Below, in pieces: positions 51,715-63,598 of a stretch of DNA of 64,000 bases. The position numbers were made by a program, and so were the translations under genes. Numbering within the stretch: the first letter of the stretch is position 1; the number at the start of each line of letters is the position of its first letter. The stretch comes from Lepidodermella squamata (Eukaryota; Animalia; Gastrotricha), in the NCBI GenBank assembly GCA_047495785.1, contig JBLDXI010000009.1, positions 868,001 through 932,000 on the forward strand, given 5' to 3'. The notes beneath the pieces are model-generated. The model ran no database searches. It worked only from the letters and a program-made list of their open reading frames with translations, and had not been told where the DNA came from.

Positions 51715-52734
51715 CTAATTTATTTTTTTATCGTTGTTGTTTTCTTCCGATTGCAGTTTGCCACGCTTTTTCTGCTTAGCCAACAGATCGCGGCATTCCT
51801 TGTAAACTTTTTCTAGTTCGAAAGCGCTGATGATGTTGTCTCTGGTGAAGGCAAATGGAGCAACACGGCCCTTGGAATCATTGAGAGGCTGACGATCTTT
51901 CTCCTCGCCGTCTTCAAATAAGATAACGGTAGGTAGTTGTTTCGAGAATGTCGAAGTGTTTATGTCGTGTCTGAAAATTGAAATGATAAGCTTATCACTT
52001 CGAAGCAAGCAAATCTCAAACATACCTTTGCGCTACGTCAGGATACCGCGAAACGTCAACTTTACCGAACTGGAAGTTTTCCAGGTCACCATACTTCTGC
52101 GACAACTCCGCGAATATCGGGGAAAAATCACTGCATGGAGGACACCACGGAGCAGAGAACATGACGAGCCATCGGATGCGCTTGTCTTTTTCCAATGTCT
52201 GATCCAAAGCACTCGCTCTGAAGTAAGTTATTCTATCAGGACCTTTGTAAGATGGCTCCGGATTGAAGAACATTTGAACTGAAATAATTTACAATCATTC
52301 AACGCGGCTTTAGCTAAAAAGGGATCACATACGCAGCATTATCGCACCATAGATTATGACGTAGAGAGGTCCTTGGCGGAAGAAAAGGCAAGCATTCAAA
52401 ACTTTGGCAAACAGGAAGACCTTTTTGAAGTAATTTCGCAAGGTCGCTTGTTTTTTAGCCTTTATCATGATAAGAACCCCGAAGGAAGCCAATAGCTCCC
52501 ATTCGCCCTATAAAAAATGAGATAGCTTGTTAATTATTCATTGGAAAATCGGCCATTGCTTACGATCTTCAATTCGCATGACTCGAAAATGTGCTCGCAC
52601 CAAGGGCTGGCTTTCAGGGCAAAGAACGATATTGCAAGCATGAACTCTCCAACGTAGTGAGCATTGATCACAGACCGCCATTCGCTTTTCAGCGTGGTTA
52701 AAACATTTTCATATAAATTGTAGAGTGCGTCCAT
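51715..52734 (-). CDS. TMX2: Thioredoxin-related transmembrane protein 2
   Basis: N-terminal TM region (EWELL..FLFAKVLN..LFFR), EPSYKGPD, FSPIFAELSQKY..FGKVDVSRYPDVA, SKQLPTVILF..G.E..RQP, C-terminal KKIN (KKxx ER retrieval); three introns. Confidence 0.92.
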
Positions 52735-52860
52735 AAATGTTAAGCTAGATCTAAGCAAAAAATTCAAATGCAATTTTTTTACTCATTCAATTTCAATTAA
52801 ATAAAGCAACATTTTTATGCAACGGCTCGTTAAAAACAGATAATTAGAAATTGGCAAAGT

Positions 52861-54381
52861 CTAAGATTGTGACGTAGATCTGCCACGGATAAATGAAAAC
52901 AGAGCAGAAGTGATAGTGCTTGGAAGCAACGGATTCGTACTGGCCATAAAACTAGCTGAATTGAGTGGCCGTAAAGAATCTGCATTCTGCCCATTATCGG
53001 CGTAATTCTCAATCCCACCAGGAAGAGTAACCCATTCTTCTTCATCGGTCATATAATCAAAAAAAGAGGGGTCAGTACTTGACGCACATAAGGGCGCAAT
53101 AACATTCAAAAGCAAAGAATCAGCATTTGGATAGTCCAGTAGTCGCTGAAGTTCCGGCTCGAATTCCAACAAATTCTGTCGAGTAGCGTTCGTCGGTTGA
53201 TTTCGTGCATCCGAATTATTGAGAACATATTCGTACAAGAGCCACAGGTTATAAGCCGGATTGCTAGGCCTAAGCAAATTACTGTCCAGTCCAATCATCA
53301 AGCAGAGAAAGCTTATATTTGCAGACACTCTAGCGGAGTAAAGGCGAAATTGGTCGACAGAAAGTCTTCCGCATAATACGTCCTTGTTGAAAATTGATAA
53401 TGGAAAAGGCAGGAAAATATTGAAAATAGCTGCTAGAGAAGCTGAAAGCTGATTCATGTAGGAGTATCCCACTACTAGATCTTTGCTTTGTAATGCTCCG
53501 GGGCCCTGAGAAGAGAAGGATGAGTCAGTGGAGGCAATACTGACACCATGTCCAATCGTATCTACAGCAAAAGGCACATATTGAGAGCATGAGCTATCTG
53601 GAGGCACCATCGCCGTCAGCAGCCTGTACCCACTCGTGGGAGTAATGACCGTCGGAGTCGCCTCAACCCAGCGTCCATTCATATACGCCCATCGCTGGGC
53701 TTCAGCTAACTGCAGAGCAACCAGATTCTCGTTATCAGGTTCTTCGTTATAAAAGTTTTTCGCGGCGATCTCAACGGATGGCGCTAATTCGATCCGAGTG
53801 AGAGGCACAACGTTTTGAAATAAATCAAGAGCTATTCGCCATTGAGAGCAACCCAGCTCCGAATTTCCTCGCGACATGTGAATTATGGAGTCATTAATTT
53901 TGCTCTCCAAGTGACGAATATTCTCAGCAGCTCTGGAGTACTTTTCGCCATGTTTCATTTCATTATTCCTACTCTCCTTGTTCATCGCTCGAATTGCATG
54001 CAGCTTTTTAGCTTTTTCTCGATTACGAGATTTTAGAGACAACACATCGTTCCTCATTTTGAATACTTCACTTCTAAGTTGCTCAATTCGGCGCTGAGTG
54101 TCGTTTCCGCAAACTGATGGAATGTTCACGAACGAGTCCAGCAATTTAGCTCGCTTTTCCCTCGCTGTATTTATACTGCTCATCAGCTGCTCAACGCTTC
54201 CTCCAATAGATGGCGAGGCTTTTCTCATGATGCAGCGTGCGCAGAAGAAAATACGCTTCTTCGAAGCGTCAATCAAACATATAGGACAAACTGCTTGCGT
54301 CACAACGGGAACAGATAACTGTCGGTTGAAAGCCGAGCGCAGCAATTTCACATCACCCAAACCGCCTTGTGAACTAGTCAT
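52861..54381 (-). CDS. ATG14: Beclin1-associated autophagy regulator ATG14 (single exon)
   Basis: N-terminal CPIC..FFCARC, coiled coil, acidic EEEWVTL LIR-like motif, C-terminal amphipathic ITSALFSFIRG (BATS-like). Confidence 0.88.
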   Translation of the reverse strand: MTSSQGGLGDVKLLRSAFNRQLSVPVVTQAVCPICLIDASKKRIFFCARCIMRKASPSIGGSVEQLMSSINTAREKRAKLLDSFVNIPSVCGNDTQRRIEQLRSEVFKMRNDVLSLKSRNREKAKKLHAIRAMNKESRNNEMKHGEKYSRAAENIRHLESKINDSIIHMSRGNSELGCSQWRIALDLFQNVVPLTRIELAPSVEIAAKNFYNEEPDNENLVALQLAEAQRWAYMNGRWVEATPTVITPTSGYRLLTAMVPPDSSCSQYVPFAVDTIGHGVSIASTDSSFSSQGPGALQSKDLVVGYSYMNQLSASLAAIFNIFLPFPLSIFNKDVLCGRLSVDQFRLYSARVSANISFLCLMIGLDSNLLRPSNPAYNLWLLYEYVLNNSDARNQPTNATRQNLLEFEPELQRLLDYPNADSLLLNVIAPLCASSTDPSFFDYMTDEEEWVTLPGGIENYADNGQNADSLRPLNSASFMASTNPLLPSTITSALFSFIRGRSTSQS

Positions 54382-58023: not shown

Positions 58024-59264
58024 TTAAATTTGAATCGCCCATTTTTCTCCCAAGTCAATGTCTTTTTTTAGTTCCTCAACTGCTTCCGCAAGTAAGCGTT
58101 TCTCGAAACCATTAATAGCGCCAAGTCCCAGATTCAGTTCGATACCGTTCGGCTATGAGATACATATGAAAAAGATGAAATGTCATAGGTACGGTTGGCT
58201 TGTGAGAATTATAAAAGTTACCCCAAGAAGAATAGGATTGCAGAAATATTTAACGTCTGAAATCTCGCTGCGAACATACGCACATTCAACCACTCCGGGG
58301 ACACCTGTGATAGAATTCGGTTATCATACATCGTTAGGAAAATTAGAAATGTCTACCATGCATAGCCTCGAGCAGGCATTGTACAAAATGGTAGCCAGCG
58401 TGAGCCATCGATAGAGTTGCCGATCCATGTCCATTTTTAGCGCTTATTACTTCGAAAATAGCTGTTTTCACGTGATCTGTCAGCTGAGATTGCTCTTCGT
58501 CAGAAAATGTGACTGCTGGGCGCATTTGCGAGAAGAGCGGCACCGTCGTTTCCTCTGAGTGACCCCCGGCAATAGGAACAACAGAATGGCCAAGTTCCAG
58601 GCGCTTGCACTTGGCTGCGAATAGACTGGCTCGCATTACATCAAGTGACAGAACACCGAATATTCGCCTGTAATATGTCGCAGGAAACTAAATCGAGTGA
58701 ATGGATTGAGTTGTATTGAAATTAAAACCTTGTATCAAGAACGCCTTGCTTCGCCAGAACGTTCACAGCTATAGGAACTAACGAGTTGATCTGGAAGAAA
58801 TCGTTATTACTATAAAAAAGCATAGGTAACCATTATTCACCGGATTCGTAATTATACATATCATCGCTTTGGGGCAAGTTTTGGCGCAAGCTGTGACAAG
58901 CTCCGTGATTATTGGTGCATTCGAAACAAATAAATCCTCCATCGTTTTTCCTGGCTGCTGCGCTTTACCCGCTGTTATCACTACTACATCGGCTCCTGTC
59001 AACGCCTCCGTAAGACCGTTGTTAGTAGGGCCATAGCCAACAACTTTGCAGCGGGTATTGACATGGCTGAGGTCGACCGCTACGCCAGGAGCTCCGACTA
59101 AGTTACAGATACAGATAACTGTTATATCGCTTGGGCAGTACCTACTAACCTAAATCGTAAATTGCGAGGGATGATATCAGCGGCGACTGCTTCAAAAGAA
59201 GGCAGAATGACTGGCCAATACCCCCTGCTCCACCAAGGACAGTAACTTTGGTTCCAAGAGCCAT
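58024..59264 (-). CDS. Divergent malate dehydrogenase 2-like 2-hydroxyacid dehydrogenase
   Basis: [37 protein letters not shown]|[29 protein letters not shown]; five introns and an open frame to ..GEKWAIQI*. Confidence 0.92.

Positions 59265-61380: not shown

Positions 61381-63598
<2,218 letters not shown>

Follow-up and report, generated by a model that had tools for sequence, protein, structure and literature searches.

An MDH2-type paralogue with an altered substrate loop in the gastrotrich Lepidodermella squamata

Can a duplicate of the mitochondrial malate dehydrogenase (MDH) MDH2 that has replaced two of the arginines with which the family handles its substrates still be a dehydrogenase, or has it become something else? 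This question is raised by an MDH2-like gene, here called gene C, in a 64,000-nucleotide stretch of the genome of the gastrotrich Lepidodermella squamata (the window; contig JBLDXI010000009.1, below contig 9, positions 868001 to 932000). Gene C lies at about 927 kb of that contig, in a compact genome whose assembly comprises 121 Mb in 151 contigs, and runs on the minus strand from 59264 to 58024 of the window in six exons with 318 codons and no internal stop in the translation; its five introns are all of the GT..AG type and 50-70 bases long. An initial annotation had described it as an animal MDH2-derived paralogue with a new switch like that of lactate dehydrogenase (LDH), and had offered two outcomes, an enzyme with new 2-hydroxyacid specificity or a pseudoenzyme. 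Residues are given in LDH numbering, and position -2 is the residue two places before position 109.

The substrate loop and family of gene C

The minus-strand translation and an ungapped alignment with pig and human MDH2 and E. coli MDH across the mobile loop bore out both substitutions that had been read from the letters, Arg102 to Gln and Arg109 to Met, and the alignment with MDH2 also gave a change of Met(-2) to Lys. Gln102 and Met109 fell opposite Arg80 and Arg86 of pig mitochondrial MDH (1MLD), which with human mitochondrial MDH (2DFD/4WLE) was the closest solved structure to C, and opposite Arg81 and Arg87 of E. coli MDH. The annotation had placed the loop at 58925-58970, essentially where the translated loop lies (58928-58969). 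Elsewhere C reads ITAG for the IPAG of MDH2 and, as had been noted, AIFEV for AGTEV (58448-58462); the change of Gly236 to Ile in the latter motif agrees with the earlier suggestion of a more hydrophobic pocket, which would probably also be smaller, and position 236 is listed as a first-shell residue (PMC4109310). The intact six-exon frame, the NAD motif, LDVMR with Asp168 and Arg171, and GGHS with His195, all reported before, were present in the translation, as was Asn140 (ITNP). The NAD(H) site as a whole (GxGxxG, strand-B Asp, NxNA Asn and LSM Met; ATLSMA), whose residues we take to have the roles annotated for human MDH2, was retained both in C and in its orthologue from a distant relative, described below.

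The LDH/MDH superfamily is a textbook case in which a few loop residues set substrate specificity. Arg171 is the anchor for the substrate carboxylate, Arg109 acts on the carbonyl by polarising it, and His195 and Asp168 serve in proton transfer; residue 102 selects the substrate R-group, and with Arg at that position oxaloacetate or malate is bound by its C4 carboxylate. Replacement of Arg109 by Gln in a Bacillus LDH reportedly lowered the turnover number (kcat) hundreds of fold. The scheme of active-site residue roles is summarised in PMC4109310.

Across 111 canonical MDH2 sequences, the entire IPAGVPRKPGMTRDDLF stretch showed an invariance of at least 95%. Of the 150 closest cluster representatives in a library of 1.84 billion proteins, 133 had Arg102 and 143 had Arg109; Gln102 occurred in nine, and the relative's C was one of the seven without Arg109, four of which, the relative's C included, were short fragments of 95-153 residues. 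As the loop is near-invariant in canonical MDH2 and its relatives, we concluded that the changes at positions 102 and 109 were not chance variation. When we considered the 120 columns that were at least 95% invariant in canonical MDH2, 28 were changed in C, which thus kept 92, 44 in the relative's C, and 23 in the paralogue B of either species (see below). Eight of the changes in C were absent from B, and three of these, at positions 103, -2 and 109, lay in the mobile loop.

The exons of C fell in the Pfam domains Ldh_1_N and Ldh_1_C, and the NCBIfam model TIGR01772 (mitochondrial/gamma-proteobacterial MDH type) was the top model for every scorable exon, with 37.8 + 98.2 + 103.9 + 11.7 + 20.6 bits; with exon 3 unscored, this gives a rough sum of about 272 against a cut-off of 273. 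Per residue, C scored about 0.97 bits on the MDH model, against 1.39 for the canonical paralogue A. The L-LDH model (TIGR01771) gave 41.5 bits for exon 2, against 98.2 with TIGR01772, and no match in exon 4. Of the residues that define a malate dehydrogenase, C lacked Arg102 and Arg109 and had Arg171, the His195-Asp168 pair, Asn140 and the NAD(H) site; of those that define an L-LDH it had Gln102, Arg171 and His195, but Arg109 was absent and the model score was below that for MDH. The His of KNGHGS (Arg in the orthologue) was considered as a compensating first-shell residue at position 246 and was dropped, as the alignment with Bacillus L-LDH and E. coli MDH was ambiguous there; the alanine of GSAT is the likelier equivalent of position 246, and the change of alanine to His or Arg is common to both C proteins.

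Paralogues, orthologue, constraint and expression

Six-frame searches of the assembly with Ldh_1_C, Ldh_1_N and the L-LDH model yielded five genes only, three of MDH2 type on contig 9 and two of MDH1 type on contig 17. The two further MDH2-type genes, A and B, both lie about 55-60 kb from C (Table 1), and A is a canonical MDH2, for which the annotation had advised a search. B has Gln102 with Arg109, Arg171 and His195 intact, so that the switch taken to be new in C proved to be shared with B, whereas the description of C as intact and MDH2-derived stood. B retains Met-Thr-Arg109 and Lys103 where C has Lys-Thr-Met109 and Gln103; in common the two have the absence of a presequence, Gln102, ITAG, Ala101, Glu110, a remodelled 236/237 helix and LSMAH. 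In both species B follows the canonical MDH2 at a distance of about 5 kb on its downstream side, and most of its introns are gone, two remaining in this genome and one in the relative, against five in C. C shares intron positions with A, and a retrogene origin of C was ruled out by its five introns, three of them at positions common to the orthologue and A or B. The open frame of C begins five residues ahead of the first beta-strand, with a stop six codons further upstream, and the gene model accordingly has no mitochondrial presequence, although the transcript contig described below begins inside exon 1 and leaves room for an upstream exon; no SKL-type tail was present at the C-terminus, GEKWAIQI.

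These profile searches found no canonical L-LDH in the assembly, a gap about which the annotation had asked, and on the L-LDH model no sequence of the genome scored above B (80 bits), which, to judge by its residues, is the strongest candidate here for an LDH-like enzyme. The published genome of L. squamata comprises 122 Mb in 157 contigs, with a BUSCO score of 80.8% (PMC11660948), and because this score is no higher, the missing LDH is not proof of absence and the gene may simply be missing from the assembly. In addition, the genome contains two opine dehydrogenase genes (Table 1), likely an alternative route of glycolytic NAD+ regeneration, and because of their presence the absence of LDH by itself calls for no replacement enzyme.

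When the large exon of B served as query in a word-index search, one close protein was returned, P0001 (L008:6160-7146; 80% identical), which is the relative's B and stands on a metagenome contig with a canonical MDH2 4 kb upstream, just as A and B are arranged here. Exon 2 of C, compared exhaustively by HMMER with the 1.84 billion cluster representatives, produced a single standout match, P0121, an exon-sized gene call of 97 residues that was 65% identical to the query. The order on the contigs carrying P0121 was nuclear receptor, MDH-like gene, a short gene on the opposite strand, ATG14-like gene and thioredoxin-like gene; the window carries the same order and orientation, giving a block of at least four shared genes. 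Because gene order and orientation were conserved, we regard this MDH-like gene as the positional orthologue of C, and because one of its contigs came from the same sample series as the relative's A/B contig, the relative has all three genes. Word-index protein searches with exon 2 of C and with exons 3-5 of the relative's C found no more orthologues, although such searches are weak since intron-split gene fragments share few words; within the data searched, a recognisable C gene was found in two species only.

The loop of the relative's C reads ITAGHSQSAGKTSEELF, identical to that of C at 8 of 14 residues, and SFDAMSAG stands opposite the SLDVMRAS of C, so that the relative's protein has Gln102, Lys(-2), Ser109 and Ser171. 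It retains GGHS (His195), Asp168, Asn140 (the Asn of SNP), GGAGGVGQ, YDI, the Asn of ENAP and ATLSM. The two C genes have three intron positions in common, and their proteins share further derived traits, namely an insertion of two to three residues after GY, TRCKV, HFVQ, FCNP and a basic residue, His or Arg, in K-x-G-x-G.

We built a maximum-likelihood tree from exon-block alignments combined inside IQ-TREE, using the fast search with the approximate likelihood-ratio test (aLRT). The clade of B and C had aLRT support of 100 and the pair of C proteins 99.3; branch lengths were 0.07-0.09 for A, 0.11 for each B, 0.17 for C and 0.40 for the relative's C. Among other animals the B+C clade was placed with a support of 28, and the tree does not date the first duplication. 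Because B and C group together and share them, the loss of the presequence, Gln102, ITAG and the remodelled 236/237 helix were inherited from the B/C ancestor; Lys(-2) and the loss of Arg109, as judged from the sequences of the two species, are specific to C and older than their split. A recent gene conversion between B and C was ruled out, C being equally similar to B of its own species (70.7%) and of the relative (70.0%).

Substitutions between the species were counted on exon blocks. Synonymous differences were saturated for A, B and C (a proportion of about 0.8; range 0.73-0.86), so pairwise dN/dS could not be estimated. Non-synonymous divergence (dN) rose from 0.115 in A through 0.150 in B to 0.335 in C, with amino-acid identities of 86%, 81% and 62%, respectively; the non-synonymous rate of C was thus about 3 times that of A and 2.2 times that of B. 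The C proteins, at 62%, were nevertheless more alike than the products of neighbouring genes, the receptor ligand domain (56%) and the ATG14-like protein (45%). Because synonymous sites were saturated and the C proteins retained an identity above that of their neighbours, we conclude that C is under purifying selection; in qualitative terms this indicates a rate far below neutral, with omega (the ratio of dN to dS) much less than 1.

Gene C is transcribed and correctly spliced. One contig of 943 nucleotides, from a public run of 2015, aligned as six blocks on C joined at exactly the five predicted introns, with junctions that read CT..AC on the plus strand and a word depth of 64; it covered exon 1 from 59150 to 59231 and on the 3' side extended to 58005. 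Junctions such as 59097|59150 and 58790|58841 were present in this contig, whereas a DNA run holding the C locus contained none of these splice joints. Because the contig lacked all five introns, we took the run of 2015 to be RNA. The annotation had named expression and neutral evolution as points on which its proposal could be checked, and the gene was found to be expressed and not neutrally evolving. The contig differed from the window at two bases, a synonymous difference at 58448 and a C to T change at 58939, by which the Glu after Met109 becomes Lys (GKTMKDLF). Canonical MDH2 has Asp in this column, where B and C have Glu, and this radical Glu to Lys variant suggests that the loop tolerates change.

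Pseudoenzyme or rewired enzyme

In the mechanism that we propose, a tandem duplicate of the canonical mitochondrial MDH2 would first have lost its presequence and gained Gln102 and ITAG and, in the first shell, a bulky residue at position 236, the product being a cytosolic, LDH-like ancestor of B and C. A further duplication would then have yielded C, which would have lost the catalytic Arg109 and gained Lys(-2), and in the distant relative C would additionally have lost Arg171. Of the substrate arginine triad, two of three are gone in C and all three in the relative's C, whereas the cofactor site and the His195-Asp168-Asn140 set are untouched in both. Because the arginine triad is eroded in both orthologues, a function common to them needs no canonical binding or activation of a 2-oxoacid. 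We favour, with confidence that stands about even, the reading that C, rather than being a malate or lactate dehydrogenase, is a cytosolic NAD(H)-binding protein of the MDH fold, most likely with strongly attenuated activity on 2-oxoacids or none; it would be a pseudoenzyme, perhaps one that partners A or B by binding the cofactor or by dimerising. MDH2-type enzymes are dimers, and for this reason a partner role with A or B is possible. As far as sequence can define a pseudoenzyme, C qualifies as one, Arg109 being replaced in both orthologues and Arg171 in one, in a gene that is intact, spliced and constrained. Between the two outcomes offered by the annotation, the balance thus moves towards a pseudoenzyme or other non-canonical protein, since the loss of Arg109 is old and is shared with an orthologue that has also lost Arg171; for the same reason a conventional 2-hydroxyacid dehydrogenase is disfavoured.

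Several observations weigh against this reading. In C itself Arg171, His195, Asp168 and Asn140 all remain; its branch exceeds that of B by a factor of only about 1.5, which equally fits a working enzyme; and Lys(-2), conserved in both orthologues, could replace the lost charge. The comparison covers two species only, and the relative may have lost Arg171 later, in an event confined to its own lineage that is uninformative about C in L. squamata. Furthermore, expression is known from one contig, and the RNA nature of its run comes from the splicing and not from a record.

The strongest alternative, which we consider a serious one though less probable than the pseudoenzyme, is that C is a rewired but active oxidoreductase. 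It would reduce a carbonyl with NADH through His195 and Asp168, Lys(-2) would take over the polarising or charge role of Arg109, and Ile236 and Phe237 would reshape the pocket for a small or hydrophobic substrate other than a dicarboxylate. In the two C orthologues the His-Asp-Asn set and the complete NAD site persist, and Lys(-2) and Gln102 are conserved between proteins just 62% identical; in L. squamata Arg171 is present, the sequence is well constrained, and the departures from invariant columns beyond those of B are only the eight mentioned above, clustered in the loop. However, we know of no natural enzyme of the LDH/MDH type without Arg109. The orthologue lacks Arg171 too, so that a shared 2-oxoacid activity is unlikely, and the 8 of 14 loop identities together with the Lys variant beside Met109 in the same species suggest weak constraint on the loop. 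A precedent for a residue at the -2 offset entering the active site exists in Trp107f of apicomplexan LDH (PMC4109310), but that enzyme keeps Arg109. The more specific claim that C is a working NADH-dependent reductase in which Lys(-2), or another relocated group, does the job of Arg109 appears to us rather unlikely. If that claim were true, C would be the first natural enzyme of the superfamily with a relocated catalytic charge, and C with B would form a living stepwise series in an animal, from MDH2 to a Gln102 form to a form without Arg109. If C is active, it represents a new way of building this active site. If on the other hand C is inactive, it offers a clean, datable case of an animal metabolic enzyme becoming a cofactor-binding pseudoenzyme.

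That C is a dispensable duplicate drifting to loss, transcribed without a selected function, we judge very improbable. Its raised non-synonymous rate relative to A and B, the stepwise loss of catalytic arginines across two lineages and the radical Glu to Lys polymorphism in the loop are what such drift would produce. Against it, both lineages have an unbroken frame and conserved splice sites despite saturated synonymous divergence between them, the C proteins are more alike than the receptor ligand domains and ATG14-like proteins beside them, 92 of the 120 canonical-invariant columns are kept, and the gene is spliced in a contig with a word depth of 64. Least credible of all is that C serves as the lactate dehydrogenase of this animal in place of a missing canonical LDH, for although Gln102, ITAG and a QQ pair resemble canonical LDH loops and no L-LDH-type gene was found in the assembly, C lacks Arg109, B with Gln102, Arg109, Arg171 and His195 is a far better candidate, the L-LDH model scores exon 2 far below the MDH model, the two opine dehydrogenases can regenerate NAD+, and the canonical gene may simply have escaped an assembly with a BUSCO score of 80.8%.

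Comparison with known systems, neighbouring genes and coordinates

C resembles canonical MDH2 in its length, fold family, NAD motifs, Asp168, Arg171, His195 and Asn140, and MDH2 is the best match of every exon; it differs in lacking a presequence and in having Gln102, Lys(-2), Met109, ITAG and AIFEV. The LDH of Trichomonas vaginalis and the aromatic 2-hydroxyacid dehydrogenase of Trypanosoma cruzi arose from cytosolic MDH, from protist ancestors of MDH1 type, and like C they are lineage-specific MDH duplicates that have lost the Arg102 equivalent, and their substrate changed; unlike C, they retain the equivalents of Arg109 and Arg171. To our knowledge, the documented transitions from MDH to LDH are all in protists or bacteria, and all keep Arg109. 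Apicomplexan LDH evolved from an LDH-like MDH of alpha-proteobacterial origin with an insertion of five to six residues, is highly active and keeps Arg109 (Boucher et al. 2014, PMC4109310); its Trp107f, two residues before Arg109, is a specificity residue that fills the space of Arg102, and a Met106Lys change occurred in its lineage (PMC4109310). C is like it in being MDH-derived, in its rewired specificity loop, in the prominence of the -2 residue and in a Met to Lys change in the loop, and unlike it in having no insertion, in being of MDH2 type and in lacking Arg109.

MDH2-type proteins with Gln102 were also found in the mite Aceria tosichella (P0175) and two relatives (P0176, P0213) and in Perkinsus chesapeaki (P0178), with the loop (A/P)QKPGM(S/T)R; unlike C, they keep Arg109. 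Because they form separate clades in the tree, the mite and Perkinsus Gln102 are of independent origin, and the change of Arg102 to Gln seems to have arisen repeatedly, and undescribed, on the MDH2 scaffold. The Gln102 proteins of the eriophyoid mites are unusually long (493-609 amino acids), and P0196, P0216 and P0223 are further MDH2-type proteins with Gln102 and Arg109 outside the gastrotrich clade. We also observed an MDH2-like fragment of 95 amino acids, P0181, with the loop IAAGSAMRSVWTTEEIL, which has Met102, Trp(-2) and Thr109, the Trp being at the offset of Trp107f of apicomplexan LDH.

In the literature we found no report of an MDH2-derived enzyme with Gln102, or without Arg109, in animals, and malate and lactate go unmentioned in the L. 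squamata genome paper (PMC11660948). At the level of sequence, C is a variation on the well-known theme of LDH/MDH neofunctionalisation, here in a little-studied phylum. Its contig holds three stages side by side, all of them selectively maintained: canonical MDH2, a putatively cytosolic copy with Gln102, and a copy that also lacks Arg109.

Table 1. Positions of gene C, its features, its neighbours and the other genes discussed (window positions unless a contig is given)
Feature	Position	Strand	Remarks
C exon 1	59150..59264	-	ATG 59264-59262; GxGxxG motif; ends IYDL (Asp of YDL); phase 1 end, donor GTTAGT
C exon 2	58841..59097	-	remaining NAD domain, ITAG, mobile substrate loop, ITNP (Asn140)
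C exon 3	58729..58790	-	phase 2 end
C exon 4	58357..58667	-	catalytic-domain core: LDVMR, GGHS, AIFEV
C exon 5	58222..58304	-	from gene model, spliced contig and family score
C exon 6	58024..58152	-	stop TAA 58024-58026; C-terminus GEKWAIQI
NAD motif of C, GGAGGIGQ	59211-59234	-	
Substrate loop of C	58928..58969	-	14 residues, within exon 2
Gln102 codon of C	58958-58960	-	
Lys(-2) codon of C	58946-58948	-	
Met109 codon of C	58940-58942	-	
LDVMR of C	58631-58645	-	Asp168/Arg171
GGHS of C	58556-58567	-	His195
AIFEV of C	58448-58462	-	Gly236 to Ile, Thr237 to Phe; canonically AGTEV
RXR-like nuclear receptor gene	61842..63598	-	directly upstream of C, same strand; relative L023:886-2400
ATG14-like gene	52861-54381	-	506 aa; 45% identical to that of the relative
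ATG14-like and thioredoxin-like (WCPPC motif) genes	51715-54381	-	downstream of C; relative L023:7362-9921
A	contig 9, ~981 kb		canonical MDH2: presequence exon (~24 residues), GVPRKPGMTRDDLF, AGTEV
B	contig 9, ~987 kb (986118-989366)		starts MSRSHTLGTKV; GRAQKPGMTREDLF; NAVYEV; without presequence
Two tandem opine dehydrogenase (Octopine_DH) genes	contig 30, 758233-764252	-	~110 bits each

The nuclear receptor upstream of C is the neighbour whose ligand domain was 56% identical between the two species. The MDH1-type genes on contig 17 form a tandem pair of the cytosolic type (one locus of the pair at 2573079-2576384), of which the second reads ATIPCK where the first has GAMPRK and has lost the Arg102 equivalent. 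Because this MDH1-type copy, too, is without that arginine, both MDH families of this animal have given rise to arginine-less copies.

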